Shown piece by piece: positions 3,001-31,446 of a DNA stretch of 64,000 nt. The stretch covers positions 1,798,968-1,862,967 of the forward strand of contig CAJFCJ010000009.1 in the NCBI GenBank assembly GCA_904063045.1, read 5' to 3'. The position numbers and the translations under genes were made by a program. Within the stretch, counting starts at the first letter, position 1. Every line of letters starts with the position of its first letter. Source of the DNA: Dimorphilus gyrociliatus. Lineage: Eukaryota > Animalia > Annelida. The notes below the pieces were generated by a model. It saw nothing but the letters and a program-made list of their open reading frames with translations, searched no databases and was not told the DNA's origin.

Positions 3001-3434
3001 AGCTGGTAAAATAGCATGATCCACATTAAACCCATAGAGGAAACAAATACAAGCTCGAGAGATTACTTCTCTTATGGTATGCTGTAGAAAATTAAATTGT
3101 AAATCTAGCTAAGACCTTATCGATATAGTAATAAGTTATGTTTAAGAATTTTCACTATTAGAGCACAGCCTACCTCACTCGTATCTGTTCTTATGAGCAA
3201 TTCTTTTTGTTTCTCAATTTCAGCAGTAATTATATCGCTTTCTTCCTAAAATAGCAAAAGAAATGTTACAGTTTGCATTGCGCAACGTTATGCTTTAATT
3301 AAACTTACGTAAGGCGATTGAGCTCTCTGTAGAGAAGAAACGAAATTCTGATGAAATTTAGATGTTTCTGTAGTACTAGTTCCAAAGAGGACAGAATTTA
3401 AAGATGATATCGTTCGTTCCAAAACTTCAGACAT
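61..3434 (-). CDS. AP4E1: AP-4 complex subunit epsilon (multi-exon; may continue past the left edge)
   Basis: Exon 1 reads MSEVLERTISSL, like AP4E1 MSDIVEKT. Internal exons give adaptin trunk motifs (LRRKAVYAFHH, LLGDKDPQVVGAA, GKLSKEFHYCTMIAPWF), the AP4E-typical LSQLDDVVADSLQNGAKPYK, and EALFKG near the end. Confidence 0.9.
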
Positions 3435-3697
3435 GATTCGATTAATTTCCTTCCCAATCAGTCAATTACTTGTTTAACTTGGGAAGTGACTTGAGTTAAT
3501 GAAGTACTTTCCCAAGCAGTTGCTCAACTCAACGACCAAAAGAGAATCTACTCAAAATACTCAGCTAATGTTTACCAGTTTTCCCTAAATATTTCACTGA
3601 CGCCATTTTCATCTAAAATACTAATGGAAAATGAATATATTTAATCGTAACCTATCATAGGAATCATATATTTTGAGTCTTTTTACTATTAAGGAGC

Positions 3698-5820
3698 ATG
3701 AAGATGAAATATTCAATTAGTTTATGCTTTATGCTCGTGATATTGTCTGCTTGCAGAGCTGATGAACACAATCATATAGTAAGATAAGATTTTGTTGTCA
3801 AACTATTACTAAAAGATAAAATTTTTAGTATGAAGATTCTGAAGAAATCGTATTATGGATGAATACTGTAGGACCCTATCACAATAGACAAGAAACATAT
3901 GAATACTTCTCATTACCGTTTTGCTTGGGACCCAAATCAACGATAAATCATTATCACGAAACATTGGGAGAGGCCTTACAGGGCGTAGAGCTAGAGTTTA
4001 GTGGGATAGATATAGATTTTAAAGGTATTTACAATTTTTTATCGTAAGCAGAGTGTAATTTATACTTCAGAGAAATAAACCTATTGCCTGTTGTACATTT
4101 CAACGCCCTTCTGAGTGCAAATTGTTAATATTTGTACTGTAAAAAAAGGGTTGAGTTATATTAGTTGATACTGTTGTTAGTAAATAAGTATGATTATGTC
4201 TAAGTTTTCGGTATTTCTTATAAAACAGCCAATATGGAGAAGAAAATGTACTGTGAAGTGCTGTTAAATGAAGAAAAGAATAGAATGTTTACGTACGGTG
4301 TTAAAAATCATTATTGGTACCAGATGTATTTAGACGATTTACCAATTTGGGGCATAGTTGGAGAAATTGATGAGAATGGCGATGGATATTATATATGGAC
4401 ACATAAAAAATTTGATATAGGTTACAATGGAAAACAAATCGTTGATGTTAATTTAACATCAGAGTCTAAAACTAAATTATCACCCGGTGTAAAACTAACC
4501 TTTACTTATGAAGTTACATGGCATCAGTCTGATGTCAAGTTTCGTGATCGTTTCGACAAATACTTGGATCCAAATTTTTTTCAACATAGAATACATTGGT
4601 TCTCAATTTTCAACTCATTTATGATGGTTATCTTCTTGGTTGGTTTGGTAAGCATGATTTTGATGAGAACTCTTCGAAAAGATTATGCTAGATATAGTAA
4701 GGATGATGATCTTGACGAGATGGAGAGAGATTTAGGGGATGAGTATGGTTGGAAGCAAGTTCATGGTGATGTATTTCGCCCAGCTTCCCGTTCTATGTTT
4801 TTCTCAGCAATGATCGGGTCTGGTTATCAAGTTACCGTTGTAGTCTTTTGTGTAATAATTTTTGCTATCGTTGGTGAACTATATACTGAACGAGGATCCC
4901 TACTAAGCACAGCAATATTTGTTTATGCTGCAACTGCTCCCATAAATGGTTATTTCGGTGGTTCTCTATATGCTCGTATGGGTGGAAAAGTTTGGATTCG
5001 CCAAATGGTATTCGGAGCGTTTTTGCTTCCCGCTGTAATTTGTGGAGTTGCTTTCTTTATAAACTTTATAGCTATCTATTATCATGCCTCTCGAGCAATT
5101 CCTTTTGGTACTATGGTTGCTGTCGCATGTATTTGCCTCTTTGTCATATTGCCATTAAATTTAGTTGGCACTGTTTTGGGACGAAATATGGCAGGGCAGC
5201 CTAATTATCCTTGTCGGGTAAATGCAGTTCCTCGACCTATACCTGAAAAGAAATGGTTTATGGAACCCTCTATTATTGTCCTTCTTGGAGGAATTCTACC
5301 TTTTGGATCCATCTTCATAGAAATGTACTTTATATTTACATCATTTTGGGCTTATAAGATATACTATGTTTATGGCTTCATGCTTCTAGTGTTTATTATT
5401 TTATCAATTGTTACTGTTTGCGTGACAATCGTCTGTACCTACTTCTTACTGAACGCTGAGGATTATCGTTGGCAATGGACATCATTTTTGTCAGGTGGAT
5501 CAACATCTCTATACGTATATTTCTACTCCATTTATTACTTTTTTTTCAAAACAAAGTAAGTTATTGTATTCTCATCATCAATTATGTTTTATTACTATTT
5601 TCTTTTACAGAATGTACGGCCTGTTTCAAACTTCGTTCTATTTTGGGTATATGGCTTTATTCAGTTTTGCTTTAGGGATCATGTGTGGTAAGTCGAGAGC
5701 AAATAAATTTTCAGCGTAACCAAATCTATTTCTAATTTATTATCGTATTCAGGAACTATGGGATATATTGGAACAAATATGTTTGTTAGAAAGATCTACT
5801 CGACTGTTAAAATTGATTAA
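3698..5820 (+). CDS. TM9SF3: Transmembrane 9 superfamily member 3
   Basis: Signal peptide, then ADEHNHI|[63 protein letters not shown], and C-terminal [10 protein letters not shown]. Introns are GT-AG. Confidence 0.97.
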
Positions 5821-9550: not shown

Positions 9551-11444
9551 ATGGAAGACTCTTTCAATTCGTTTACAACTGTTTTTAAAATAGAGAGTTA
9601 CGATGGATCCACTCTACTTCAACCAATCGCCCAACTTATAGAATTTGGCCTTGATAAGGTATTAGATATTGATTTATTACTTTTCAGACTTATTCTAAAA
9701 GATCTTGCCTTTCTTGAACAGGTCAATTTTTTTGCATGCCAATTATTGAGTATTGTCATAGCTTATCTTTTTCGTATATTCTGTCATCCAAAGCAATTTA
9801 GTATAAGAAACCGTCACATAGTTCAGCTCTTTGTCGGTGTTTCTTTATTATACTTTTGTTTTGGCAAACAAATCTCTCATGTATGGTTGCAACTTATAAT
9901 TAGTTATGGATTATTGAGATATATAAAAACTGGATTATCGGAAAAAATTGTTTTAGTATGGTGTATGGGACATTTATCATTTTGTCATTACCTTCGGGCT
10001 CATTATACAGATGGAAACTATAATATTGATATTTCTGCGTAAGTAACCCATATTTAATGATTTATTTTATATTAAACTTTTTGCTTAGGCCACTTATGAT
10101 ATGCGTCCAAAGACTAACAAGTTTAGCTATGAATATTAGCGATGGTAAACGAAATGACCAAGGGAATGACGTTAAAAAGTTATCTCATAAGAAAGATATT
10201 ATAATCAAGTAGGCCTATTAAATTATTAAAATATTATTTAATAAGATAAATATTACTCTTTTAGAGAAGTACCAACATTTCTAGAAGTTGCCAGTTACGT
10301 ATTCTCTTTCCATACTCTTTTATCCGGTCCTCTAATATTCTATAAAGATTACGACAATTTCATCACTGGAAGGAATCTATGCGACAAAAATGGATCTAAA
10401 CTTAAACCCGAACCTAATCCAAATGTAAAGATACAATGTTTATTTAATAAGACAAAAGATATTTATATAAATTGTTTAAAAATATCTTTAGAAAATCATC
10501 ATAAAAAAGATATTAACTTCTCTAGTGATTGTCATATTATTCATTACCTTCTCACCTTTTCAAAATGCTAATTACGTATCGGACTCTAACTTCTACAATC
10601 AGTATTTATTTAAAAAATGGTTTATGTTATATTTATTTCATTGGTCAAATTTAATGAAATATGAATTAACCTGGAAGTTGGGTAAATGATTTTCTTTATT
10701 ATTAAATATTAAAATATTCACTAATAGTGATTTTCTTCTTTAAAAAGCCGAATCGGCTAACGTAGCCGCTGGTTTAGGATTTCAAGGGTATAAGGAAAAT
10801 GGTGAAGAAGATTGGAATGGTGCTGACAATTTATCTTTCTGGGAGTTTGAGGTAGTAATTAATATTTATAGAATTTAATTAATACTGTATTAATTATTAT
10901 AATTTTAGATTTCTAGCTCCATTAACAGATGCGTTGCTACCTGGAATATAACAACAAACGTTTGGCTAAAGTATGTTGTTTATGAGAGAGTTCCTTTCTT
11001 TCAGAAATGGGCAGTGTTTGGCTTTAGTGCAATATGGCATGGATTTCAAGTTGGCTATTACGTTTGCGCCATTAGTTGCATGATTTTACGTTCAATTGAA
11101 CGTAGAATTAGGAAAAATTTCATTCCTTTAATGGAAAAATTTCCCGGGTCATTACAGATTTTCTTTCGTATCATTGGTCTTGTTGCTTTTAAATTAGGTT
11201 GTGCTTTTTGTGGAATGCCATTCCAATTTTTAGATATGGAGTTATATTTAAAAACAATGAAGTATGTACAATTAATGATCCCTTTATTTTACGTACTAAA
11301 TTAAAATATAATATCTCTTCCCTTTTCTGCAGGAGTATCTATTATTCTCCAATATTTATGACAATCTTTGGAGTATTATTAATCTGCTTGTTGAAATATC
11401 TGAATAAAGAAACATCGCTTCAAAGAAGTAAAAAGAACAAATAA
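9551..11444 (+). CDS. MBOAT1/2-type lysophospholipid acyltransferase, copy 2 (diverged)
   Basis: YDGSTLLQPIAQLIEFGLDK|VNFFACQ parallels copy 1; motifs TWNITTNVWLKYVVYER and FSAIWHGFQVGYY; ends SKKNK. Confidence 0.88.
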
Positions 11445-11752
11445 GAACTGGTTTTTTTTGGAGTTTTTTTATATTTTTAATTAATTTTTGAATAGCTAAA
11501 GTTTTCTTGTGTTTTATATCAAAAATATTTTAATTATTGCTTTTGCTTTTGTTTAAAAAAAGTAAATAATAGTAATAGAAAATGGCAAAATAGTACTTGA
11601 CGTAAAAGCTTACCAGTTTATAAACCATAGCAAAAAAATTGATCAAGTAAGCATAAACAGGTCTGGGCAGACTCTATGATTCGTTGAGTAATCTGCGGAT
11701 AAAGTATAAATATAATCGCTTAAAACAAGTACAAAGTGTCATTCGGTTAAAG

Positions 11753-13037
11753 ATGAGCAAGCGCAAAGCACCAACAAATGACAATCCAAACAAAGATATC
11801 ATTGATTTTTTGATGGGTAAATAAATATGAATGAAATTATTATTTGCTGTAAAAGAATGATTAATTAAAATCTAAAATCCATAGAATTAGGTGAATACGA
11901 AAAAAATGTCTCTAGGATGATGCATAAATATAAAGCTTATAGAAAAGCTGCATCGAGTATAGCAAAACATCCAACAAGGTTATCATCCGGAAAAGAAGCT
12001 CAAACTTTGGTTGGTGAAAAGAAAAATTAATATGAATATTCATAATTTTGATTATAAAATACAGGAAAATGTTGGTAAAAAAATTGGTAAGAAAGTTGAC
12101 GAATTCCTAGCGACTGGACAACTGCAAAAATTAGAAAAGATTAGAAAAGATGATACATCACAATCAATTAACGCATTGGCAAGTGTTACTGGTATTGGTC
12201 CTGCTGCCGCCCAAAAATTTTTTAAAGACGGAATAACATCAATTGAAGAATTAAGAAAAAATACAGATAAATTAAATAAACAACAGAAAATAGGATTAAA
12301 GTAATAACAAAATATATACTGCAATGTTTTATTAGATTTCTCTTATATACTTTTGGCTATTTTTACCATTGTAGATATTATGAAGATTTTAAGAAACGAA
12401 TCCCTAGAAAAGAGATGATCGAATTACAAGATATTTCATTTAAAGTAATACATAAAATTGATAAAGAGTATGAAGCACGTGTTTGCGGTAGCTTTAGAAG
12501 GGGTGCAAGCTCTAGTGGAGATATTGATATCTTACTTACACATCCAGAATTTACTTCGACATCTGGTAAGAAATCTCATCTTTTGAAAGCCGTTGTTACT
12601 CAATTGGAAAAAGCAAAATTTATAACAGACACCTTATCAATGGGAGATAGTAAATTTATGGTAATTAAGACTATGAATATTAATCATATGATAGATTGTA
12701 TAAAAAATACATATATGTTTATTTTCTCTGATAGGGCGTTTGCAGAATCCAAGATAAAAAGGATGAAACTGGTGAAGACTACCCCTTCAGACGAATAGAT
12801 ATTCGTCTAATTCCTCATGACCAATATTATTGCGCACTATTATATTTTACTGGAAGTGATGTGTTCAATACAAATATGAGATTACATGCAATTGAAAATG
12901 GTTTTACATTAAACGAGTATTGCATCAGACCAATGGGATCAACGAATGTCCCTGGAGAAGCTTTACCTGTAAGATCTGAAGAGGATATCTTTGATTACTT
13001 AGATATGAAATATACAAAACCAGAAGATAGAATATAA
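11753..13037 (+). CDS. POLB: DNA polymerase beta
   Basis: MSKRKAP start, [11 protein letters not shown] lyase region, [11 protein letters not shown] Hh[20 protein letters not shown] catalytic motif, [24 protein letters not shown]. Confidence 0.96.
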
Positions 13038-13132: not shown

Positions 13133-14994
13133 CTAATAATCAATTAAACAATAATTTAATATTGTACCATATATTTTATGTAGACATATATAAGAGTTTT
13201 CATCATTATTCATAAGAATTGTATCATTTGTAAGTATCTTTTCGTGTATGATACATTTCTTTTTATTTTTCCAATAAACTATATTTTGACAATTAATTCT
13301 AATAGTACAATATTGAATACATACTTTAATACTATTAACAGCTGTTTCTAAGATTTTTGACGATAATTTAAACTTGTTGCAGTTTTCATGAATATATAAC
13401 GTTATATTATTCATCATTGGCGAAGAGAAAGAAGTAGGAGGAGTAGGAGGAGGAGAGGGCTTAGAAATTATAGTAGGCTTTGTAGAGGTAAAGGAAAAAG
13501 GAGAGGAAGGGAGAGATGAGATAGCAGGAGTTGATGAAATTGTTAATAGACTACTAGTATTTAATGAAGAAGTAGAGGTTACTGGTAACTGATAACTAAT
13601 GAAACTTTCAAATCCGTATGCTTCTATTTCATATACTATGAGACGTCTCTTAGTACTAATTTCCAATTTTAAACGCCTTAACATTCTATCACATTTCAAA
13701 TACATCCATTGTTTATCATAAGTACGTCTCGATTGGACTAATCCGCATTCGTTAAAAGTATCATTCAGCTGACTCTTCAACGTTAAAACAACGTTAGCTA
13801 GTTAAAGAGATAAAATATGTAATTAGTTCTTTTTAATAGAGATTTGAAATTTCAATTTCAAATACTTTTTTTTGTACATTTCTTTTGTTTAAACACATAA
13901 TTTCCATTTTCATTTAACTTCATAGCTTTAGTATTAAATTTATAACATTCTCCTTTTAATTTATCAAACATAATGGAACTGTTGGAAAATGTTATAAAGA
14001 ATATGATGTTATACAAATAGTAGTATTATACAACTTGTTACTTGCTGTATTTTCATACAAACCTACAAGATGATAAAAGTAGACAGCTTAATTGACAGTC
14101 CCGTTTGGATGTTGAATTGATTTTTGTATGATTGTATTTATCTATATCCATGACAATAGATTTATTTTTAGCTTGCCAATTGCACCCTAATCGAACAAAT
14201 AGCAATTCTATCTTATAGTAAGAAGCGTTATCTTATTGTAAATTTTATACAAACCTGTAGGTCTAACTAATCCTCTTATAAAGTTTATATAAAATTCTGT
14301 TGGAAAGGTTATGATAAGAGTATCCCTATAACCGAGTGAATAACCCGGTTCATTGAAATATCCATCAGTTAATTGAAAAATCTTCAAACTTTTAGAATTG
14401 ATAACATCTGCCCGAAAAGCTAAATTTCTTGTTCCATTAAACACTTGAAATTGAACGATATCGTATGAAGAAAATCGTAAAATTCTCCCTAAGGTGTCAT
14501 TACTAACTTGAATAAAGTTTTGCGTATAAGCCCAAAATGGTCTCTTAACAGATTTCAGGATTGATATATTACGATCTGAAGGAATATTATCAAAATAGAA
14601 TAAAACTGCTGTGACGTAAGATTTCTTTAACTCTTTTAGTAAATTTCTACAGTTTTCGTTGAAGAACGTATTATCCATTATTCTTAATATACTTATACGT
14701 TTCTCAACATGAATTTTTCTAATTTCTGTTGTTGTTGAACAATTTGTTGAATTAATTGTTTTAAAATCAACATCAGCCGTTATCTTTTCAAAAATATAGA
14801 AATATAAAACAACCATTTTAATAAGGATTTCTATTACTCACTCCATTAAGTTTGTCAAAGTTACTATCCAGAGTTAGAGCGCTAAAAGTTATATTCTCTG
14901 GTAATAAATGAAGATATATTATCTTTGTTCTTATATCAGCCAATAAAGAATAGGTATTGATAGTAAATATAATTACTTTCAAATAGAATTTCAT
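13133..14994 (-). CDS. Secreted PA-like / PAN-apple / mucin-stalk protein, paralogue D
   Basis: Spliced model: MKFYLKVIIFTINTYSLLADIRTKIIYLH..NG| then NC..VEKRISIL..C..VTAVLFYFDN..RPFWAY; PAN CQLSCLLLSSC..GECYKF; LIVYEIEAYG; S/T/P stalk; PAN CIQYCTIRINC..KKCIIH. Confidence 0.65.
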
Positions 14995-15544
14995 ATCCTA
15001 TCGTAAGTTGTTTGTTAGATATTACAAGTGTTGAATTGTGATGAAACTGACAACTTGTTTTCTATCAATATTCAACGTTATTGGAAAAAGAAATCTCATC
15101 TTAATATTATATGCATGTTTGTTTACTTGATTGGTTTAATTATTAGTGTAAAGAAATATGCATTAGAGTTTATTTCTGAGGAAATTAAGTCGACCATTAG
15201 TATCTTAAAATAAGTTTTCTTATTAAATTATATATGACGATAGTAGAACTGATATTACAATAGAAATTATATCAATGATATTAATGAATATAGGTTTAAA
15301 AATCTAAAAAAGATTACTTTAAAAAAAGACTCTGATTAGAAAGACGAATACTGTATCTCTAATGAGCATGTATTGTTTTTAAATTAACATAAAACACGCT
15401 GTGTTTTTTGTCCAAATCTCCCTTTTTTCCCATTAATAATCTACATTTTCAATGAATATATTAATGTTTACATTATACAGTATATCTATACATTAGTATA
15501 TATATAACACATATAGAATATGTGCAAATTTTGCAGTGTAAACT

Positions 15545-17199
15545 TTAACATCTTGGTGATAGCTTTAAAATGTTCTGTTTTATGATACTAATTGTCCTTT
15601 CGTATTCGTTTCCTTCAGTTAATATATCATCTGAGTAAATTGAAATGTAATCAATGAAATTGTTATTGTGAATTTTACAAAGAGATTTTGAAAGGTCATA
15701 TACGAGTGCCTTACAGGTTAATGATTGAGTACATTTATTACAACACATTATTAAAGTTATTTCGTTATGTTCTTCATTAACCATCTCTAAGTTTAGGGTT
15801 TTATTCTTTAATGATATTAGTTTATCTTGTTTTCTATTCAAAAAAACTGTAGTAGGTTTTTCCGACGATGAAATTGCCTTTACTGGTAGAATTGTAGACT
15901 CTATTTCACTTGGAAGATTAGTTGTTAGAGAAAAAAACTCAACTTTACTTATATTCAAAACTCTGGACAATATTAAAGTTATACTATCCGCACTAAATTC
16001 AGTAAATATATAAATCCAGCGAGCTTTATAAATGTCTGTAGAATATTTTATCTTGTTTCCATTTGATGCTTTTAAATAAAAACCAATAGATTCTGTTTAA
16101 AAGCAATAAAATATAAAATGATAATATAAATTCTATGATATAAGCGTTAATATTACGTTTTTTTATAATGCAATCTCCTTTCTTTATTCTTATAGACATC
16201 TGTACAGGTGTTTCCGTAAAGTAACATTTACGATGTTGAATTCGAAATGATCTGATTAATTTTCGCTTTTAGTATTCATTATCATAAAAGAATCAAAATA
16301 TTAAAACAAACTTGCAAGCCTCCTCCATAAGTGTACACATATATTTACAAGAAATTATATTCTTTTCAAGAAATCTGTTATTGCTCATAGTTGAACTAGT
16401 TGTATACGAACATACCTCTTAAAAGATGAATTAAACTTCTATTAATAATATGAAATTGTTTGTATCCTTACTATTTGACGGAACTCGAAACCTTATTATA
16501 TTTATAACCGAATTTATATGTTGTTGTCTATCTATGAAATCTATTTTATAGTGACTGAATGGTATTTCAGCAGTCATCAATGATCGTAATTCTTTAAATA
16601 GTAAATTAGAATACTGCGAAAATTGGATAACATGCGGTCTAGTTTCAAATAGATTAGATGTTTTTTCAATAGAAATATACATCCAAGGAATGTTTGGCAT
16701 TGAATGTAGATTGTTAATATCTGAAACAGAACAAATAAACAAACAAGATAAAAATTTTCTATCTTTAATAAAGATAATTTAATTACCAAGATTATCATAA
16801 AATACAAGTAGAATAGCTTTAATTCCTCCTTTTATATATTTTTCAACTGTTTCCTTACATTTTATAGTTAGGAAACTGATTTCAGATACTTCAAAGATTA
16901 ATACTTTATCTTTCACTATGTCATCATTATTAAAATTCTTCAAATTGCAATTATTATCCATAATTCTATCATAAATTGTTTCTCCAATAACCTAAAATAA
17001 ACAAACAAACAAATAGCGTATACAAAAAAAACTTGATAAAGCTCACTCCATTCATTGTGTTGACTTTTGAATACGAAGATAAACCTTGATACTTGTAATT
17101 GTCCAACATAAAATGTACATATAACTTATTAACTGTACAAAGTATATGAGGATACTTTACAGTTAATAGTAGATAAGTGAAAATATGAACTCCATTCAT
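15545..17199 (-). CDS. Secreted PA-like / PAN-apple protein, paralogue C
   Basis: MNGVHIFTYLLLTVKYPHILCTVNKLYVH..NG| then NC..VKDKVLIF..C..GGIKAILLVFYDN|..IPWMYIS; PAN SCKYMCTLMEEAC..RKCYF; terminal PAN CCNKCTQSLTCKALVYDLSKSLCKIH. Confidence 0.65.
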
Positions 17200-17376
17200 C
17201 TTTATTATATCTACTAACTCTTTTAAAGTTACTTTAGTTATGTTGAATGATATACTGTATAACAATCAAATATCAAGAAAATCCTATTTATGTCAGTGAT
17301 AAATAACGAACAATAAGAGACAAAAAAGTATATAATTTTTTATTTTTATAGATTTATAATTGTATTTGTTATCGAT

Positions 17377-19154
17377 CTAGCAAAGTAATTTTGGCTTCAT
17401 AAGCTTTTTTTTATAGAATAAAATATATGGTGTATTGTTTTCGTTAAATGTCTGTGAATCATTTTCATCGAACATTGAAGTTTTATGATAATTATCCATA
17501 ATGAATAATTCACAATTAAACTTCCTCTCGTAGAACAGTACTAATTCACATTTTAAATTGTTTAGACAGCTTCTAGTACACTGTGTTATGGTTTGTGAAG
17601 AATTGTCTACTTGTATATGAAATCTACTCATCGACACCGTCTGATTTATAAATGGTATAAATTGAATAATTTTCCTCTGAGGTGTTGATAATGTAGGTTG
17701 AACCATAACTGTAGGAGTTGGAGACGTCGTAGAAGTATACTTATTTCGTAGTTCGTAGTGAAATAACTCAATTTCGTAATAGATTAATGGGGTTAATTCA
17801 AATGGTGTTGATATTTTTATAACTTCACCCGTCATTTCACACAGCGAGTAAACCCATTCCAATTTATTCGACGATCTCACTGGTATTGGCCTACATGTTT
17901 GAACAGTTTCCTGAGAAGAATGAGTCCAAGAGGATAGAATAATTTCTGTATTATCTATAACATACTTGTATAAATATATATAATCTTAAATACTTAAAGG
18001 CCCTATTTTGGCAATTACCTCTAGTTTCGCATATTTTATGCCCGAAAATAGCATCAATATTATAAATTAAAGATTTCAAAGAACGTATATGCAGATGGCA
18101 TTTTCGTTTAGAAAAGTAATAATTGTAAGATCTATATAAACATATATACAGTATACAGTATATACTAATACATAGAAAAGAGCAATCTTCAAAATGAAAT
18201 TTCACTTACAAACACTGTTTTTCAAGTATGCACTCCTCTTCGCAACGAGTCATCGATAAATGAGCTAGTAAAAAATAATATGAGCTCATATTTTCATGAT
18301 AATCTTTAGTAGAAAAGCTGCAAACTAATAAAACAAATTCAAGATTATAAACAATACAATAAAAGATTTATTACTTTGCGGTTTTATTAATAATTTCATA
18401 AAGTTTATCTTCATAGTTCTTTTCAAATTAATTTCAATTGATTGACCATTCGCTATTAAACAAGCTTTTATAATATTTCCATCTGATAAGCACTGTGTAG
18501 TTTTATAATCCACTTCAAATGAAGCCATCTTTGCTAAATTTTTTGATTTGTTACTTGTGAAAAATATGGAATCTTTCTTTGAAAATTTGATCATTTCTTC
18601 ATTAAGGTTTAGTAAATGATCGAGTTCCCATATCATAAAGTTTATCTGAACAATAGGAATCTTAAGTGTGAACCTATCTTTCAAATCAGCCATGATTTCT
18701 TGGGATTTATAAGAAAAATAATACAATCATTTTGATGATATAAACTATTAATGTTCAAGTTACAACTTACCTTTTTCTGTAGACAAAACGATGATAGCTT
18801 TAATTCTATCATCTATCTTTATTGATCTACAGGTAATCTTTTCGATTGTGTCTATGGTAATAACAAGAATCCTATCCTCTCCTTCAAGAAAATGTTCAGT
18901 ATTCATTGAACAAGGATTCTTTATTAAGTAAGATCTACCAGAAACCTCAAAAAAAATGAAACGATTATTCTACTGTTGTACCTATTTATGTATTATTATT
19001 CATTCATTACCCCAAGTAGCTCTTCCTTCCATAACGCCATTGATGCTTTTACACTTAAATCTCTAGATATTGCATGAACGTATACGTCGTAGTTTTCATC
19101 AGATAAAGCCAACTTAAATAGATGAAAAATTGTCAAATATTGTCTGAAAATCAT
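17377..19154 (-). CDS. Secreted PA-like / PAN-apple / mucin-stalk protein, paralogue B
   Basis: MIFRQYLTIFHLFKLALSDENYDVYVH; NPC..RILVITI..C..IKAIIVL|..IPIVQI; PAN CEEECILEKQC..RKCHLH; WVYSLCEMTGEVIKIS..LIYYEIELF; T/P stalk; PAN CTRSCLNNLKC..NCELF. Confidence 0.65.
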
Positions 19155-19308
19155 TGTTCTCCAATAAGATAAACTTAATAAGGAGAACTTTTAAATAGGC
19201 TCCATACTTTTATATGAAAAAGATCAATTAATCGAATAAAAAGGATAGATTTAGTGTCTCTTTTTGACAAAAAAAAGTTTTGAAGAAAAAGAGTAAATAA
19301 CATAGAAA

Positions 19309-21014
19309 TTAGCATTTATTATAAAATTCCGTATTACCTCTAACAAGACAAATGTTAAGTTCATATACTTCTCGAACATTGAGTAGTTCAATTCCTTGAT
19401 TGCTCACAGAATAGACTGAACATTGTCGTGTACTTGTGTTATAGCATACATATTTGCATAGGATTTTATTTTGACATTCATTTATACATTGTTTAAGATC
19501 AATGTTAAATATAAGATCTTCTGAAAATGCTTTTTGTTGGCCAGTATATCGACTAAAACTCGTAAAAAGTATTGGCGCAACTGTAGTCAATTCAGATGTC
19601 GTAGGAGGTTGAACGGTAGTTGCTAATGAATAAGGCGCAGACAAATCATTGAAAATAATCACTACACGATCATTCGATCTCATATTGTTGTTTTTGAATT
19701 CATTAATGGAGTATGTTCGTATCGTGGAAACTCTTAGATATCTTCGTAGATTATTCAAAATCGTTAACTTTGATAAATTAAAATTAACAAATGAGTAAAT
19801 ATATTTATCACTCGTAGATGAAATTATCCCTTTTCTTAAATCATTAGTATAATGAGAGAAGCAGAATATATCTATTGAATATATTGAATATGATTAGATA
19901 CTTATAGTAAATTAGTGAAAATATATATTTTATTCAATACCTGGATCTTTTGGTGTTTTTCTAAACTCTCCAAGACTATAAATTCCAGGAGATGATATTA
20001 CTAAATAGCAGGTCGGGGCTAATTTAATACATCTTTGAAAATGAAAAAAAAAACAGCACTAATAATAATTGAAAAGAGTTATATTACGTTGATACTATAC
20101 ATGCAATCATCCAGTGCAATGCATTCCTTTTGACATGTTTTTTTGTTGTATGCATACTGCTTTTCCACATAAATTCCTTCGCAAGCTTCATTGATTGGTG
20201 TAAAAATTACATCTAAAACAATAATTGTCTTCTATACCTCGTCAGGTTTAACAAGGAGAAAGTTGTTTTTTAATTAACTTACCAAAAAAATCTATATTTA
20301 ATTGCATAACATCAATAGAAAGAGGTGTACCCGTGGATGATTTAAGGCTCTGTTGCTCTTCAAGCGCAAAAGTTAAATCTATTTGCATATTCTTTTTAAA
20401 ACGTAACATTTGATTTGTTGATATAATCATTTGACTTTCATTTAGAGAATTTATATTATTTAGATTTGGTGGTTGTTCAAAATATGCCCATGGAATTCCA
20501 TTAGTTACCATACTATTTAAACTTGAATTATCTATATTAACAATGGAATAATAGAATGTAAATATGATATTAAAATAAAGATTTTACCGAAATTCTTTGC
20601 TATTATAACAATAGCTAAGACGCTTTCATTTACATATTTCTTTATACGACTTTTGCAGATGGTATCAAAATAGGAAGTATCTTCAAATTGAATAAAAGTA
20701 ATTCTATTATAATCTCTTCCAGTACAATTTTTATAGCTTAATTCGCAAGAATTAATTAAATTTGGATTAATAGGTCCTCTTATCTGAAAATGTAGGGATT
20801 AATTAAAGTGGTATTAAGATAAGAATTTATTGATAACAACTTGAGCAATATCCTTCAACATATCGATATTTGCATAACCTGCAATTCCATTACTCTTATA
20901 ATCATCTGTCATAATATCTTCGAAGATGTGAAGGAACACATTGCTATTTAGACATAGTACAGTTTGTATCAATATCAATGAAAAATATAGAATCTTAAGT
21001 AGAAAGATCATCAT
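19309..21014 (-). CDS. Secreted PA-like / PAN-apple / mucin-stalk protein, paralogue A
   Basis: MMIFLLKILYFSLILIQTVLCLNSNVFLH; NSC..RITFIQF..C..VLAIVII|..GIPWAY; PAN CQKECIALDDC; TTVQPPTTSELTT stalk; PAN CINECQNKILC..RQCSVY. Confidence 0.65.
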
Positions 21015-21149
21015 CGGTGAAAGACTTGTTTGTAAAGATTTTCGAGGAATAATCTTCTTATTTATATGCTGTTCAAAATATTTTTCAGCAATTGAACGTA
21101 TCGGAGAATTGATGAATTATATTCTTTCTATTCAATAGATCAGAGATAT

Positions 21150-21570
21150 ATTATGAATTATTAATGCTTGTAATTCCTTATTACATTCGTTTTTTTATTA
21201 TATTAAACAAGCTTATACAATTGTCCTTCGAGCATAAGTGACATGATAAATAATCGAATATTTCTCTTATGAAATACGTGATAGAATATTACCATTCTAA
21301 TTTCCAATGTTACAATTTGTGTTATTATTCATATTATGTTAAGAATGAAATTAAAGAGAAGCATTTTGTCTTTTAGGATATAAGGGATTGTAACGAATTC
21401 AAAATTTGATTGAATTGTAATAAAAACAAGAAAATATTTGTTTATACTCATGTAAACTTTTCAATTTTCTTAATATTGGTAGTTCCTTGCAAACAAGTGA
21501 AAACAATTGCAAATCAACATATTCAATAATCCTATCAAATTTATTTTTTATCATTTGTATGTCAATGAAA
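21150..21570 (-). pseudogene. Possible decayed remnant of a further PAN-family paralogue next to the retroelement
   Basis: Stop-interrupted frames include YLSCHLCSKDNCISLFN, which is PAN-like Cys spacing. No intact model could be built. Confidence 0.15.
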
Positions 21571-21579
21571 ATCATGTAT

Positions 21580-24303
21580 GACAAACTCTACAGCTCTTAT
21601 TCTTATTACACGACAATACAAAGAAGATGTTTCAGATAATTTACTTTTAATCATCCTCCTTGAAATGGTGATATGAATGTATGAATGCATGATCCATCGA
21701 CAATCTGCGCGCTGTGCCCTGTTGTCCATAATTCGCAATTCACGAATCCTTAAATTTGCGATCCACAAATTGTGGACCGCACATCCCAGAAAACATTCAA
21801 TCACATTGCTCATGTACAAGCCGACAACACGTGATCATAGTGGAGATGAGTAGTGTCAGCGCCCGAGCAAAATTTCATGAGCAGCGTTTAAGGAAGTGTA
21901 AAAGAACAGTGTGGGAGAAGGAAAAGAAAATGTCATTAGATAGCATTAAGGAGATTGAATTGGCTTTGAAAAATGGGTACGAACCGGCAGCAGAACGACC
22001 ACAAGACAGCGAGGTGAACATGGAAATAGTGGGGGCTGAAGTCACTCCAGGAAGGAAAACAGGGGTTAGCAAGTTGCTGAGCGACTGTGACAATGAATTT
22101 CAACCAGAACTGGTGAGCCCAAGCTCAAATGTAGAGTGGAATATATTCGATGATGGAAGGGCGAGAAAACTAGTAGGAGGCATTGAAACAAGAGAGGTCA
22201 GTGAATCTGACACTGACGACGATGGAACTCAATCTAGGAGAACTCGTGGGATTAGAATAAAAAAAAAGGCGATGGCCAACACCCCAGTGAAAGATATAAA
22301 CTGGACTTCTGATGACGTAGAGAAAGATAATGAATTACAAAAGAATTGGACTCCTGTTGGCGCAGCAGATGCATTGAACACCAGAAATACTCATCAGTGG
22401 TATGGTGTCGGTGGTCAAACAACCAAGAAGACAAATGATGAACTTGTGTTAGTTTACGATAGAATGAGAAGGTTGTTGAATGATGAGGAAAACACCCCTA
22501 CGGGGGAACAGATAGGACGAGACGAAGCAATAGTTTCAAGCTCACAAGAAACAGACAGGGAATGGATGAACGTACAACGTGAAGAGATTATGGTTGAATG
22601 TGAAGCGATTCTACAGAGACATGTAGTGAGTTTCGAGCAAAGTCAACATGAGATGGAGATGAGGATCATGGATTCTCTAAGACGTGAAATAAAACTGGCC
22701 ATAGGAGGGGTAATAAAGAAAGGTGAAATGGAGGCATTTCTGGCAAAGGTGGGTGGAGATGTGCGAGACATTAGCACCGGATTGAGAGAATTCGAGCATA
22801 AGAGTCTGAAAGAATATGGAAGAGCACTCACAGAGGCTAAACAAGAGATCGCTGATCGGATAGAGAGGAGGCGAGATGAAAAGACGGAGAAGTCAGTGGC
22901 TACCAAAGCTCCTTCCCCAGCATTGTTGGGGGGAGAGTGCGATACAGGTCATACCAGTTGCCCTTCTAACCTGGAAAACCCTCGTAAAGAACAGGCAAAA
23001 GAGCCACCTGGCGCGTTTGAAAGTCGGTTATCATCAACTCGACCGATCTTTCATGGAGATGCCACCTATTTCGAGGTATTTATGATGAGACATGAACGAT
23101 TGGTAGACAAATACGATATTGATGACTGGGACAAGCTCGATCTATTGCTTGCTCAGTTGGGCCCGGACATCAGGCGTGAATTAGAAGAATACCAAAAAAG
23201 GGAACCTCTTGGATGTTATAAAAGTGCACTTCGGTATCTCCAACGTAAATATGGGGAAATACAGCATGACGCAACCAGAGCATTGACAAGACTCCAAAAG
23301 ATTGGGCTTGTAAAGGAGAGTGACTATGAAAGCCAGGAAAGACTGGCGCGCTTGCTGAGAAAAATTCAGTCTGAGTTCGAAACAGACAATAAAGATGGCC
23401 ACCAACAACAATTAGAAGTTATCGGACTCGTGGCAGCCAAGTTCTGTATGGATGACTGCCTACGTAGGGAATGGACAAATAAAACTTTTGAGAACGGTAA
23501 CAAGATTAGCCTGAACAACATGGCAGAGTTCATTGAAGACTATGCAAAGGTTGTCAGACTTATAACAAAGTTCACATCACGTGCTGAAACGAGAAGACCA
23601 CAACATGAGCACAGCAGAGGGATCAACTATAATGCATCTTGTTTCAAATGCGGAAAGCATCATACTCTGCAATCATGCGCGGAATTCAAAAGACTGAGAA
23701 GGCCGGAAAAATTGCAAGTGGTGAGGAACTTAGGCCTATGTGAAAATTGCTTACAAAGTCACACTCACCAAGCCAACAAATGTGTACGATCACCCTGCGA
23801 GACCTGCAATACCAAAAGACATCCCTGGCTACATAAATGTACCACAAAACGCCCTCCTATTAAGACAGTAACGTTTGAACCTTTAGAGTCACTGAGTACA
23901 GATCTAACAGTGATGGTAATTGAAGTAAATGGAAGAAGCCTAGTGACGATGCTGGACACTAGTGTGGATATCACACTCATAAGGAAGGGAGTTATAGAGC
24001 AGATAAAGGCCAAGAAAATAGGAGTTAGCACTGTAATGCTGGCGATGATGGGAAGACGAGAAGCATATACCGCGCCAAGGTATGAGATTGAGGTATTTGG
24101 AAAGAAGATAGTGGCAATGGAATATCCGGAGATAGCAATCGTGAGCCAGAACAAATTGTTGTCAGACGAACTAAATAGACGGTCATACACGGAGGACGTT
24201 GAAATCCCCCAGCTAACCGAGCACCCAGTAGATTTGCTAATGGGAAACGATACGTATAAGTTATGTGGATTGAAGGCGGTCTTAGAAGAGAGTAGGAGAT
24301 GAT
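21580..24303 (+). mobile_element. Truncated Bel/Pao LTR retrotransposon (gag and protease only)
   Basis: GC-richer than the flanks. The long ORF has a DUF1759-like gag core (RPIFHGD..F..LLAQLG..A..L..KYG), three Bel/Pao-type Cys/His knuckles and a protease-like LDTS. No RT, RNase H, integrase or paired LTRs. Boundaries are approximate. Confidence 0.88.
21846..24302 (+). CDS. Bel/Pao Gag-protease ORF (818 aa from the first ATG)
   Basis: Uninterrupted ORF with CFKCGKHHTLQSC, CENCLQSHTHQANKC, CETCNTKRHPWLH and TMLDTSVDITLI. The stop coincides with the return to AT-rich DNA. Confidence 0.88.
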   Translation: MSSVSARAKFHEQRLRKCKRTVWEKEKKMSLDSIKEIELALKNGYEPAAERPQDSEVNMEIVGAEVTPGRKTGVSKLLSDCDNEFQPELVSPSSNVEWNIFDDGRARKLVGGIETREVSESDTDDDGTQSRRTRGIRIKKKAMANTPVKDINWTSDDVEKDNELQKNWTPVGAADALNTRNTHQWYGVGGQTTKKTNDELVLVYDRMRRLLNDEENTPTGEQIGRDEAIVSSSQETDREWMNVQREEIMVECEAILQRHVVSFEQSQHEMEMRIMDSLRREIKLAIGGVIKKGEMEAFLAKVGGDVRDISTGLREFEHKSLKEYGRALTEAKQEIADRIERRRDEKTEKSVATKAPSPALLGGECDTGHTSCPSNLENPRKEQAKEPPGAFESRLSSTRPIFHGDATYFEVFMMRHERLVDKYDIDDWDKLDLLLAQLGPDIRRELEEYQKREPLGCYKSALRYLQRKYGEIQHDATRALTRLQKIGLVKESDYESQERLARLLRKIQSEFETDNKDGHQQQLEVIGLVAAKFCMDDCLRREWTNKTFENGNKISLNNMAEFIEDYAKVVRLITKFTSRAETRRPQHEHSRGINYNASCFKCGKHHTLQSCAEFKRLRRPEKLQVVRNLGLCENCLQSHTHQANKCVRSPCETCNTKRHPWLHKCTTKRPPIKTVTFEPLESLSTDLTVMVIEVNGRSLVTMLDTSVDITLIRKGVIEQIKAKKIGVSTVMLAMMGRREAYTAPRYEIEVFGKKIVAMEYPEIAIVSQNKLLSDELNRRSYTEDVEIPQLTEHPVDLLMGNDTYKLCGLKAVLEESRR

Positions 24304-24645
24304 ATGTATTTTTAAACGCCTTACGAATATCAGTAGTTTGATATACGAACTAATCCTGATGGAAATTATACAGTATATGAATTCTAAATTACCAAGATAT
24401 CTATTTAGACAAGGAACATAATTGAATGAATCATCATTAAACCATGACACCTTTGTGGTAAAAACAAAGGGTAAAAAGTGCATTTTGCAAAGTTAGGATA
24501 GATAAATCATATACTGTATATCATTTATTCTATTGATGATAGATGGCGTTTGTAGAGATACATGAATTTTTTCAAAATGTTCCTTAATTTTTGTCGTTTA
24601 ACAATTTACAATATATTAATAATATAATATATAAGCTTAACACTT

Positions 24646-26536
24646 TCAACAGTTGTTTATTGGTCTATATTTACTTTTTAATAAGCAGATCTTTGATGAA
24701 TTTGACAATTTATCTACATTATAATTAATTGAAGACATATCAATCTGAAAATACATAGTACATTCTAAGAGAGAAAAGTTTAAGCATATAATTCTACACT
24801 TATCTTCCAAACGACCCAATTTAGTACAATCTCTTAAATTGGTAGAATTAGTCTTGGATGAAAACGGTTCTGCTTTTGGCACGCAGGATATCTGTCGAAA
24901 AGCGAATATAAAATCATCATTACCACCCGACGTTGTTGTTTCACTATGTGTAGAGGTTTCAATGATTTTCATAGTGGTTGTTGGAATATTGGTTGTAGTA
25001 CCATCTTTCATTGTTGATGCAACTTTTGAGGTGATCTCCGGTAAAATTGTTGATGGTGTAAGAGCTTGCTTAGCTGCGTTCATTGCTGGTTTGATTGGCT
25101 CTTTAGGATTGTCCATTAATCGAAGATTTATAATAGCATTGTCATAATATATATCATTTTCCCCACTTTGAATATCTCCATTATGGTTTTCAATATGATA
25201 AATATGTAAGAAAGGTATAGTCATAGTTCTATTCAAATGGTTATGAATTGAGATGTTGTTTGTTGTAAAATTGGTTAAAAGTATTATTTTTATATCATTA
25301 TAAAGTAGATATTCATAACTTTTCCCATTATTAATATCAACAAAAAGCTTAATTGCTGAAAGAATTTTTATCGATTTAATGATAAAACGATTTTTACTAT
25401 TTAATACAAAAGAAAGAAAAATGCGCTTACCACTCCAAGCATGAGTTAATTTTTCATATAGCATCCTAGTCGCCGTAGACGTTACAGTAACAAATAAATT
25501 ACTGTTTCCATAGAATTTATACAGTGAACATTCCTCAAATTGAAAAGAGATAAAACTATTTGGAAGGAGAAAAGAATTAGAGGATGTAGAATGGAAACAT
25601 ATTTTAATTAATACCCGCAATTATTCACTGTAGAACAAGATCTCTGGCATTCGTATACTGAATCAACAAGATACATTGATATAAACTTTCCAGAAAGAAG
25701 GTTTCTCTCTTCAAAATAATCATCTTGAAAGAAATTAAAAATTGTTCGATTATTTAAATTGAAATGTAAATATATTTAAAGTTAACTTCGCCTTTTAACT
25801 TTCAATATTAACATATGAACAGAGTATTTATGAAAAAGTTCTCTCTTCCTTAATTCTTTGTCCGCAATTAGATCTTGGTGAAAGATATCGTTATAATCTT
25901 CAATTACATGTAATTTCCCAACTAAAGAGAATATTATCCAAGTATTCTGAAAATAACTTTGATGTTCTTGCGATATTAAATAAGCCCAGGGAATACCTCC
26001 GGTATTTACAGTTTCTAGATTGCTAATTGCTAATACAATAATAACATCATGTAGTAGAATACATACTGTATAGTATACAGTTTAGTATAAGGATTTATTA
26101 TATTTACTTAAAGAGTCATGAAATAGGAATATAATTGCATCAATATCTCTTATACTTCTATAATTTAGAATGTTCATTTTACAATTGCTGTCAAATTGAC
26201 TGGCCTGAAATATTTTTAATATAATAACATTATTGTTATTATTATAATTAGTAGGATCAAGTAAACACGAATGTTCGTTTGATGCTATAAATTCCGTAAC
26301 GCCTTTTACCTGTTATATGTTTTCTTTTTATTTAAATATATCAATAGTATTAACAATATATTACCTACTTTTAATAACTTTTCAACCATATGTTTATTAG
26401 TTGTTAAAACTTCACCATTTTGCGATAAAAACGGTGAGTTATTAGAAACAAGATGAAGATAAATAGTCTCATTTAAAATTGTAGATACAACTGCAAAATA
26501 TGAATAGAAATAGATAATATTAAATATAATAACCAT
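24646..26536 (-). CDS. Secreted PA-like / PAN-apple / mucin-stalk protein, paralogue E
   Basis: MVIIFNIIYFYSYFAVVSTILNETIYLH; HSC..NVIILKI..NC..IDAIIFLFHD|..GGIPWAY; PAN ECQRSCSTVNNC..EECSLY; long Thr stalk; PAN DCTKLGRLEDKC..ECTMY. Confidence 0.65.
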
Positions 26537-26899: not shown

Positions 26900-28272
26900 A
26901 TGCAATCTTTTAGATATCATAACTATGATAAACATTTTCAAGTTGATAATGACGATCTATTCTTCAATTTTAATAACGAAATAGGGGTTAGACTTTCATT
27001 TTATAGTTTTATTTACTAAATATATACAGATACTTAATATCGCTCTCGTAAATATTCAAACTATGTAGTGCAACAATCATAAAACGAAATTGTTACGTAA
27101 ACAAACTCCATGTTTCTATTGGAAAATAAAGAATAATGAATCTTCTAAGTGTAATTTAAAAATGAATAATTTATTCATAATTATAGTTAATATTTTAATT
27201 AGATGAGAAGAGGCAAACTGCTGAGAAAGACGTTTGTTGTGAAAAATTTGATAGTGTTTCAAACGTCTACGATCAACTTTTACAAACGACAATCGAGTTG
27301 GAGAAAAACTACAGAAATAATAAACGACTCTTTGATACTTTAAAGAGAGATAGAGAAGAATTTAATAATACTATTCAAAGTAGCTTTCAATCAACCTTAA
27401 AGCAATTATTACAAGTTAGAGAGACTTTGGAAAAGCTAACATCACAGATGGAAAAACTTGATGAAAATAGCAAATTGAATAATGAATGTTCTCTTCTACT
27501 GGACAAAAATCTTATTGAAATCTTTCAAAATATCATTAACGAGTATGGAGAGAAAGCTGGAAGTAACAAGAGAAATCTAGAAGAAGATGGTAATTCATTA
27601 AAGAACAAGATAACAATGAAGAGCGAAATAAATGATCTTTCGAATATATCAACAAAGGAACGAATTTGTACTCATGATAAAAAAGATGAAGAGTCAAAAA
27701 TCATTGACTATCATTTCACAGAATTTCCAAAAATAGATTTTCAGGGAAATTTATCATACTTAGAAAAGTTTGCTACACCCTTTAAAGAGTCTAATGAACT
27801 GTTTAAAGAAAAAAAAGGACTTATTAATCACTTAACAAAGTTATCTCAATCAATTATTGACTTTTTCAACAATTACGTTGGAAAGCCGTACATACGAACA
27901 AACTTTCCTAAAATGATCTATATGTTGCCAATTACTCAATATACTGGAAATCTAAGAAATATATGGAATATACCAAAGAAAGATTCATCTGATTATCAAG
28001 AGAGAAATTCTAATACAATTGAACCAATAGATTGTATTAAAAGTGCATCGAAAGATAAGAATATAGATAATAATTCGCAATCATCGCAATCATATTTTGA
28101 GTTACCTCAAATTACATCTAACCCAGATCCATCCGATGGAAGAGACAATGAATATTTTGATGATCGAATGTCTAAAAGTTCAGAAAATTCTGAAACAGTT
28201 GATTTAATACAAATTAATACATTTTATAACGAAGATATCAGTATAAGTTTATATTTAGAAGATTCAATGTAA
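26900..28272 (+). CDS. Hypothetical coiled-coil protein (start exon uncertain)
   Basis: 324-codon open terminal exon with heptad-rich LKQLLQVRETLEKLTSQMEKLDE. Upstream exons are inferred from GT/AG sites. No family recognised. Confidence 0.5.
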
Positions 28273-28780: not shown

Positions 28781-31446
28781 ATGGCTACTTTGGAAAAAGA
28801 AGTACCTGATTTAGGTCGAATAGCGGAAGAGGCTAGATCGGTTTTAGCAATGCAACCTAAGAAAAGTATTTTAAAAGTTCGAGATCGGCCATTAGAGGCG
28901 CAATCTAAACTAGATATTCTTGTAAAGAGAGAGGAAAAATCTCAAATACAAATTATCAATGATAATAAAGAACAAACTATTGTACAAGAACAGCAAAAGA
29001 TACAAAACGAACTACAAAATGATCTTAAAAAAGCGTCTAAACTCAGCGTTGTCAATGATAAATCATCACAAAATGATAGGCGCGATTCAAAAGATAGTAC
29101 GGCCGAAGTTTTAGAATCTTTAAGAGATATTAATAAGGAGTTTGTTTCCGAAAGAAAGAGAAAGAGACGCCAATTGGTACGAACTTTGCAAGTCTTATAT
29201 CATATATTCAATTTTTTACTCTTGGTGTTGACTTGTATTAATTTAGGATTAACTTCAATTGCTTTATTCATAGAAATAAAATCGATGTATACTATTTTAA
29301 GGATAAATACCATTTATCCAAAAGAGCCGAGAACTTCTCTTCTTGAATGGACAGGATATTTCCAATTTTTTGCATGTTTAATAGATGTTTGTATATCTGC
29401 AATAGGATTTAAAGGAACTAAAAAGACGGTTATAGCCCATATAAGCGTCCTATGTCTTTTCTTCTTTAATCAACCTATTATCATTGTTATGTTTATTCTA
29501 TATAAAGATTTAGCTGATAACTATTTAAAATTGCATATGCTTAATATGATTAAATATAATTATCGACAAGACGATGAAACTCAAATTGTAACTTATAATG
29601 AAACGTCTAAGTTTGGCATCAATAATTATGCGAAACAATGGAATTATTTACAATCAAAGGTTAGTTCATTTTTCTTTAATGAAAAAGTATGAAATTAGAT
29701 GCTTTCTTTTACAGTATAAATGCTGCGGTGTACTTCATCCTAACGATTATTGGAATAGGACAAATTACAATTTCTTTTTCGTATTTAATCAAACTTTTAT
29801 GGTATAAAGATATTACTTTAAGAAATCCTTTAAAATACTGACATATTTCATTCAATTATTTCAATTCTTATACAGAAAAGAGGTAAAATTCCGGCATCTT
29901 GCTGTAAAAAATCCCATAATCCCAATAATCTGCTAAATTATTTGGAAGATAAAGACGCTAAAAATTGTCTAAATAATACATTGTTTGTTTACGAAAGAGG
30001 TTGCTTTAAAATTATGCAAATTAGATTACAAACTTATTCGGATATAGTTAAATCATTTACAATTTCAACAATTCTTCTCAAGGTAAATAACTTTCAGTTT
30101 AACTTCTACTTATTAATATTTAAATATATTCATATATATTCAAATAGATTATGCTGATTATTACTGCAGTTTACTATCTAAGAAAGTTAAGGAGGCCTAT
30201 AAAACGGAGAAAATTAATATATGATACTAATTCGAGTGATTTGAATACAGCGGAAGTTGAAGAAGAGGAAGACGAAGATGACATGCAAGATATGTCAAAA
30301 ACAGGATCCAAAAATGATTTATCATCTTTAATGGAAAACATAGCGGCATCTGGAGCTGATGGTAATATTCTACCGTTTTTATTACCATTTTTAACACAGT
30401 ATCAAATGATGAATCCTGCTTGGCAAAGGAAGATAAGAAATTTGCAAAAAATTACTGCGCTAAACGCTCAAATGCAACTAGAAAAGTTACAAGAAGAGGA
30501 AGCAGCTAGAAAAAGGAAGGAAAAAACGAAAGAGATCAAGGAGCAGGTTCAGGAAGGAGGAAATGTTTTATTAGAAGATGAAAATATGAATGACAAACAA
30601 AAGAACAAACCTCCAAAGTCTGTTACAAATAAAGGAAAATTGAAAAAAGAAACTAAAACAAAATCCACAGAAGAAACGAAAGGTGTTGCTAAATCTGGAA
30701 TAAGCCCGAAGAATGACAAGTCAAAAGCAAAAGTAGAAAGTGATAAATTGGCTGTTGAAGATGTTAAAATTGATATACAGGAATCTAAAGAAAAGGTAGA
30801 ATTTGAAAAAAAAGACGACACGGAATCAAATTTAATTGCTAAAGACAAGTTAAAAACATCTGAAAGGAAGAAGGAAGACGATAAAAATATTGAAGATAAA
30901 ATTGAAAAGAAGAAAAGTGACGCCTCCATAGGTTCTATGGCAAAAAGGAGATCCGAAAGATATCTGGATAGATTAACTAAGCAAAAAAGTAGTCAAAGGT
31001 TACCGTTCGATCTAACGGATAGAGAAAGACGGTCCCTTTTTCCTAAATACTCGAGAAGAACTTTAGATTTATATAAAGAAGATTCTAGGAAAGTGGAAAC
31101 AATTGATCAGATTATAAACGAGGCAACGACTACAATAAAAAATGACCAGGATAGAATAAAAAATCTTAGTACTCTGGGAAAATTGGGCGTCAAGAAGCAA
31201 GAAAGCACATTTACATGGAGAACGTCCAGCAGAGCCGATCTTTTCCAAATGAAAACAGATAATCCAATGAAAAAAAGATCTTTCTTTAAAGATCAAAGTG
31301 AACAGTTACTAGCGGATAGAGACTTTGAAAAGAAAAGACAAGAGAGCGAAGCTCATCTCCAAGAGCTATTAGAGAGAATGAAGAAAACTGCTTCAAACTT
31401 TAGGTTGCAAAGAAGATTTTCAAAAGATCAGGATACACCTAAATGA
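28781..31446 (+). CDS. Tetraspanin with long N- and C-terminal cytoplasmic extensions
   Basis: Four hydrophobic segments; large loop with WNYLQSK|YKCCG, IPASCC and GC; about 135 aa before TM1 and about 420 aa of charged tail after TM4. Confidence 0.85.

Follow-up and report, generated by a model that had tools for sequence, protein, structure and literature searches.

PAN/apple modules of the PAN_1 clan make up the N domains of plasminogen and HGF and the apple domains of factor XI, and recur in apicomplexan MIC4 and nematode PAN proteins. PA-domain proteins include the secreted, PA-only PRADC1 and the PA-TM-RING ligases, and the F-type lectins, among them FBP32 (PDB 3CQO; Pfam F5_F8_type_C_2), are a further described group with which the present locus can be compared. 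This locus is a tandem array of five genes (A to E) at positions 13133-26536 of a 64,000-nucleotide stretch of the genome of the annelid Dimorphilus gyrociliatus (contig CAJFCJ010000009.1, G000:C9, positions 1798968-1862967), the whole of which is referred to as the window. The explanation that accounts best for our observations, to which we assign a probability of about 0.6, is that the genes belong to a very fast evolving family of binding proteins that are secreted to the outside of the cell and probably glycosylated, a family found only in Dimorphilus and one related organism and with a proposed nested-PAN architecture. The predicted order of modules is a hydrophobic N-terminus, a short motif, a module of about 110 residues, a beta stretch, an internal PAN, a beta segment, a T/S/P-rich linker and a terminal PAN.

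The five gene models were derived from stop-to-stop frames joined by frame-consistent GT-AG introns of 45-85 nt, the median intron given in the D. gyrociliatus genome paper being 66 bp (PMC7854359). All five are co-oriented on the minus strand in AT-rich DNA with short introns, are open from ATG to stop over 451-527 codons, every length being divisible by three (Table 1), and share the intron phases 0-1-1-2-1; intron 2 is absent from D, so that the entire N-terminal module of this gene lies within a single exon (14255-14783). One splice site, the exon 5 acceptor of B, is uncertain (18131 or 18164). The public annotation, in which AUGUSTUS, Exonerate and PASA transcripts were combined via EvidenceModeler (PMC7854359), contains three products of the array. 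DgyrCDS7695 (P0002, 461 aa) is identical to our gene A model, all five split or joined codons agreeing. DgyrCDS7694 (P0060, 222 aa) is a partial D which starts at an internal Met and reads through the exon-4 donor, its exon 2/3 and 3/4 junctions matching our model, and DgyrCDS7696 (P0001, 247 aa) is a partial E with an exon 5/6 junction that agrees with ours. No product of B or C was found in a HMMER scan of 1.84 billion protein representatives and, since the CDS numbers 7694, 7695 and 7696 are consecutive, B and C are taken to be unannotated. The five co-oriented genes with a shared plan that an initial annotation, made from the DNA letters, had pieced together are thus borne out by complete models, by their common phases and by the agreement of three public models at the junctions. 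Its short motifs were also all found in the places assigned to them, namely VFLH, VYVH, LYVH, IYLH and IYLH (residues 24-26), the exon-2 starts IRG, VSG, VIG, ITA and VKG, two Cys, the xA[IV]hhh strand and the IPWAY variants.

Exon by exon, identity among the copies is only about 16-30%, and cognate exons match collinearly. Searches and fold predictions were run on individual exons, with the annotators' P0002, P0060 and P0001 used for whole-protein checks. Single-sequence searches of the genome recovered none of the paralogs; one match from such a search (L002), a PHD-finger gene, was taken as chance. With leave-one-out hidden Markov models (HMMs), 13 of 15 withheld exon copies ranked directly behind the four training copies (E 1e-16 to 4e-3; 2.6e-7, 5.7e-7 and 1.8e-7 for gene C) and outranked the rest of the window's six-frame segments, about 1,800 in number, the exceptions being B exon 2, which was marginal, and the exon-3 equivalent of D, which failed. 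Run in six frames against the whole genome, the exon-2 profile reached the five array genes and one more, F, on contig C12 (E 7e-6), and nothing else, which brings the family to six members in D. gyrociliatus. Internal repeats were considered and rejected (hhalign P 0.41 for the exon-2 against the exon-3 block, and P 0.49 for the exon-3 block against the last exon).

The assignment of the terminal module to PAN/apple, as made initially, is supported at the level of sequence. The module retains a C-x3-C-x5-C-x(8-11)-C core and was matched by Pfam PAN_1 (cut-off 21.4 bits) at 27.0 bits in F, 24.5 in B, 23.4 in D, 22.0 in A (18.8 when scored from the whole protein rather than the exon) and 20.5 in C, the last being additionally matched by PAN_2; that of E, in which one core Cys is replaced, had no Pfam match. 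Searched against PDB, the last-exon profile A5 found apple/PAN as the sole coherent family (MIC4, HGF N domain and microneme antigen L2; E 0.018-0.1). The internal module, coded by two exons flanked by phase-1 introns, is probably a PAN/apple as well, although weakly supported. It is split by a phase-2 intron, so that single exons are too short for Pfam. Its contiguous D copy in P0060 was matched by PAN_1 (19.5 bits, E 8.9e-4, profile positions 11-73 of 76) and also by PAN_4 and PAN_3, and exon 4 of E gave a weak PAN_4 match (E 0.012). In A, the internal module had no Pfam match in contiguous P0002, though the C-x3-C-x5-C-x8-C pattern is present.

The N-termini are hydrophobic, with a maximum 10-residue hydropathy of 1.55-2.67 within the first 25 residues, and the last PAN Cys closes every protein, except in D, where four more residues follow, with no hydrophobic tail; by hydropathy the proteins look secreted, with putative signal peptides as described at the outset and no membrane anchor. 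The proteins carry 13-18 Cys, NxS/T sites and S/T/P-rich stretches, S/T/P reaching 75% across a 40-residue stretch in gene D, and the T/S/P-rich spacer that had been placed between the PAN modules is present in most copies and weak in C. The hydrophobic N-termini, Cys, NxS/T sites, S/T/P-rich linkers, absence of an anchor and two PAN modules together suggest that the products are secreted glycoproteins with glycans or proteins as their ligands.

Beyond D. gyrociliatus, relatives were found in one related organism. In a protein scan, profile A5 reached three Logan ORFs (P0009, P0030 and P0031) and two public proteins, the remainder being generic PAN proteins. The three ORFs map to whole-genome contigs of runs SRR23372216/228/229/231, and exon profiles recovered family exons in the contigs of this organism with E 1e-10 to 1e-12. 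Here a same-orientation array adjoins the same DNA polymerase beta (Pol beta) gene, which flanks D', followed by cyclophilin and TM9SF, as in the window. Read towards Pol beta, this array comprises E', X', Y', a lone PAN remnant, B', C' and D', compared with E, a retroelement, A, B, C and D in the window, and B, C, D and E each have an intact counterpart. In C' the internal PAN is missing, and the IPW motif through the terminal PAN lies within one 250-codon exon; this, together with the extra members X' and Y' and the PAN remnant, indicates a turnover of both copy number and architecture between the two organisms. No match beyond these two came from word searches with the N-terminal module (a D + D' profile; P0002 residues 25-210).

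Array orthologs are 24-41% identical, compared with 74-83% for Pol beta and 96% for TM9SF, and the view of the array as lineage-specific and highly diverged holds. The identity of B' (L024/L022) to B is 41% over exon 3 and 28-30% over the last exon, and F and its ortholog F' are 55-60% identical. The values of dN were 0.52-0.75 for array exons, 0.28-0.39 for F, 0.10-0.14 for Pol beta and 0.03 for TM9SF; the dN/dS ratios proposed initially came to 0.24-0.62 but are unreliable owing to saturated dS, and selection is not quantifiable from them. Codon positions 1 and 2 of the array differ less than position 3 and every frame is open in both organisms, from which some constraint on the genes follows. 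Copy turnover and the low ortholog identity may reflect weak constraint or diversifying selection on binding surfaces.

These observations bear on the possibility that the array is a relic and some of its copies, B and C above all, pseudogenes in decay. We regard this as highly improbable, since the five models remain open across 451-527 codons in five or six exons of DNA with 25-31% G+C, where base composition predicts that about one random codon in 12 is a stop and that a 200-codon open frame arises by chance at a frequency near 1e-7. The GT-AG sites and phases are preserved, Cys positions are conserved, the first and second codon positions are the less variable, and the counterparts of B, C, D and E are intact, even if the lack of a public gene model or protein for B and C, the partial annotation of D and E, the extreme divergence among copies and the PAN remnant of the related organism (L024:8594-8893) speak in favour of decay.

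The module of about 110 residues that follows the [VIL][YF]xH motif has two conserved Cys and a predicted strand-helix-strand-helix-strand order. The initial annotation read exon 2, with the IPWAY part of exon 3, as a highly diverged PA domain without protease or RING, followed by two PAN modules, a reading that we consider distinctly unlikely. The layout on which it was based is present in part: the elements follow the PA order (Cys, strand, Cys and helix, xA-strand, IP-strand), and the second Cys is separated from the A-strand by 13-14 residues, just as in true PA domains, whereas the two Cys are 29-31 residues apart in the family, compared with 22-24 in this genome's PA domains, and neither the RG nor the GA motif is present. 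Statistical support was found neither by profile nor by fold. With the E limit set at 10, Pfam PA matched none of the exons and none of P0002, P0060 and P0059, and a six-frame PF02225 scan of the whole genome identified eight true PA domains, none of them within the window. When a nine-sequence exon-2 profile was compared by hhalign with seven true PA domains of the same genome, the family block was placed in exactly the register proposed (58 columns, P 0.013), but with a probability of just 3.4%.

AlphaFold models of the single-exon module of D had a pLDDT of 41 from the sequence alone and 52 with a ten-row alignment, the exon-2 part of AlphaFold alignment A12 being covered by just three rows; other MAFFT alignments (A3, A4, A6, A8-A10 and A13), in which exon-3 or last-exon pieces were misplaced onto the exon-2 region, were discarded. 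The low-pLDDT model runs strand-helix-strand-helix-strand over residues 30-87 and has strands only thereafter, a predicted order that would be compatible with PA. No PA protein was among the Foldseek matches listed or among the 50 best chains of VIA-align (48,161 representatives compared), and in the fold searches the N-terminal half resembled generic STAS/Rossmann-like alpha/beta folds at noise level only. Searches of PDB sequences with A1, A2 and D exon 2 gave chance matches only, and the ESM Atlas model of P0002 had a pLDDT of 0.36. An ESM Atlas feature search returned DUF4249 (0.89) with low recognition, which was uninformative, and no named cluster was matched. In the literature we found neither a paper devoted to the combination of PA with PAN nor one on the present family.

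The end of exon 3 and the region first described as a spacer apparently hold a further, beta-rich unit, including, at the start of the last exon, a short and conserved beta segment (W.Y..C...I.I...EIE.Y) that follows the internal PAN. A candidate relative of this unit was found next to F. The last-exon profile, iterated from A5, matched an exon of G' 3.4 kb beyond F' (E 1e-12), and gene G of D. gyrociliatus, which may be an older relative of the family, showed weak matches along its length in the same order as the family, namely a two-Cys (N1) block, the IPW motif, beta segments and PAN, its last exon being PAN-like. In searches of 2,319 segments with HMMs built from the family only, a G exon was the best non-family match to the segment after the internal PAN (E 0.002), and G exons were the best non-family matches to the exon-3 end (E 0.0044 and 0.06). 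A 298-codon exon of G in turn matched the F-type lectin FBP32 (E 0.063), with the hallmark motifs in register, and Pfam F5_F8_type_C_2 (E 0.015). A phase-1 intron of G separates the two halves exactly where the family carries its internal PAN and, as the family PAN lies between two phase-1 introns, we propose its insertion by exon shuffling. The beta stretch before and the segment after the internal PAN would then be two halves of one galactose-binding-like (F-type-lectin-like) unit, left unsplit by PAN in G, and the internal PAN would have entered a phase-1 intron of this unit in the family. That the internal PAN is such a 1-1 module, inserted into a galactose-binding-like unit, is suggested by sequence links each weak but concordant, and we hold it tentatively, at slightly under an even chance.

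The same data could be read otherwise, the module before the PAN and the segment after it being lineage-specific folds unrelated to PA or to a lectin-like sandwich, and the likeness to G a matter of a common local ancestry of an orphan domain. We think this rather unlikely: the adjoining exon of G bears recognisable F-type-lectin hallmarks, the family segment aligns with the last strands of the lectin-like domain of G, and FBP32 is the only PDB sequence reached by a profile combining the two. It would nevertheless explain the absence of any significant match in Pfam, PDB sequences, a 5.8-billion word search, ESM Atlas and the fold searches, as well as the low pLDDT (0.36) of the Atlas model.

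Returning to the preferred explanation, a family of secreted binders with a nested PAN, the PAN modules, and perhaps the lectin-like unit too, may bind glycans or proteins outside the cell on an O-glycosylated, mucin-like stalk, candidate sites of action being mucus, the surface matrix or the egg capsule. Fast change and copy turnover fit a recognition or a surface/mucus role. A more specific version, in which a PAN nested by way of a phase-1 intron in a galactose-binding-like (F-type-lectin-like) sandwich is combined with an N-terminal alpha/beta domain for which no relatives are detectable, be it a new fold or PA in an extremely derived form, the whole being confined to dinophilids and its fast diversification perhaps serving mate, gamete or microbe recognition, is possible but doubtful. 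Several points weigh against the preferred explanation. The family's own sequences match no lectin or discoidin family in Pfam or PDB searches; FBP32 was reached by the combined profile (A14, family segment plus G) at E 2.2; and the evidence for the lectin-like link consists of E values of 0.002-0.06 in small searches together with short motifs. The signal peptides were judged by hydropathy only, the five gene models are predicted from DNA with no public model for B and C, dS is saturated (1-2 even for TM9SF), and the function is deduced from domain types.

Outside the family, the 22-24 kb bin of the window has 44% GC compared with about 25-31% in neighbouring bins, the sole such exception in the window, and contains a retroelement-like ORF with no Pfam match. 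This insertion looks specific to the D. gyrociliatus genome, as only about 650 bp lie between E' and the next gene in the related organism. TM9SF/EMP70 provides a handy yardstick of divergence between both genomes. The neighbours of F' are glycoside hydrolase 31 genes that carry trefoil domains, together with a sulfotransferase (L018:900-6900 and 10745-12025), a neighbourhood that, judged solely by adjacency, could relate to glycan or mucus biology.

Table 1. Coordinates of the array genes and of surrounding and related features. Positions are those of the window unless another locus or contig is named.
Feature	Location	Strand	Remarks
Gene E	24646..26536	-	518 codons; exons 26369-26536, 26108-26309, 25787-26029, 25615-25723, 25431-25555, 24646-25355 (stop included)
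Gene A	19309..21014	-	461 codons; exons 20841-21014, 20588-20783, 20283-20531, 20101-20212, 19941-20032, 19309-19871
Gene B	17377..19154	-	482 codons, unannotated; exons 19011-19154, 18771-18945, 18375-18698, 18210-18324, 18019-18131, 17377-17954
Gene C	15545..17199	-	451 codons, unannotated; exons 17047-17199, 16787-16991, 16472-16720, 16312-16417, 16157-16251, 15545-16092
Gene D	13133..14994	-	527 codons; exons 14842-14994, 14255-14783, 14063-14186, 13866-13978, 13133-13797
Terminal PAN core, gene E	24748-24837	-	
Terminal PAN, gene A	about 19312-19533	-	
DNA polymerase beta-type gene, last exons	12415..13037	+	Pfam DNA_pol_B_palm and thumb; synteny anchor adjoining gene D
TM9SF/EMP70 gene	4234-5559	+	protein 96% identical to counterpart in related organism, dS about 2
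Retroelement-like 848-codon ORF	21756..24302	+	inserted between E and A; outside the family
Three long ORFs past gene E	27298-28272, 28781-29692, 30151-31446	+	no convincing Pfam family; first ORF with a weak BLOC1_2 match only
Gene G	L040, about 2088-5816 (G000:C12, about 1040600-1044300)	+	beyond sulfotransferase gene adjoining F
Array features, related organism	L024:3319-7427, L024:8594-8893, L022:6573-7322		L024:8594-8893, lone PAN remnant

For a reference annelid genome, the analysis supplies models of B and C, which lacked annotation, and corrects the partial ones of D and E, and it defines a small unnamed family with relatives confined to two related worms. Within a conserved syntenic frame, the array cleanly illustrates how fast proteins can evolve and copies turn over. 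If the nested PAN is real, it would neatly show how a module can be inserted into an intron inside another domain and, should the N-terminal module prove to be a new fold, its structure would be worth determining. Secreted families that evolve fast and are specific to one lineage are common, and the wider impact is therefore moderate.

Set against described systems, the family resembles PA proteins in a similar succession of elements (Cys, strand, helix, A-rich strand, IP-strand), in a Cys pair compatible with a disulfide and in an extracellular setting, but differs from them in the absence of profile or fold support, in its longer Cys spacing, in the missing RG and GA motifs and in having no protease, transmembrane or RING part. 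With mucin-like glycoproteins it has in common a T/S/P-rich linker of some 40-100 residues between folded modules and many NxS/T sites, whereas the linker is short and single, weak in C, and unlike that of mucins forms no long tandem-repeat domain. The resemblance to the PAN_1 clan lies in a terminal module that scores at or near the Pfam cut-off in A, B, C, D and F and, as in PAN/apple proteins, the family is Cys-rich and extracellular with a presumed binding role. It departs from these proteins in lacking kringle, protease, ZP or lectin-kinase partners, in having one PAN apparently nested between the halves of another unit, in the loss of one core Cys from E and in a divergence between close species far above the usual. 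Compared with F-type lectins, the proposed family unit is shorter, interrupted by PAN and without a direct Pfam or PDB match; the likeness is carried by the domain of gene G, which has PWW.vDL-like and LCEVEV.G-like hallmarks, and with the last two strands of which the segment after the family's internal PAN aligns, ending in EIE.Y(G).

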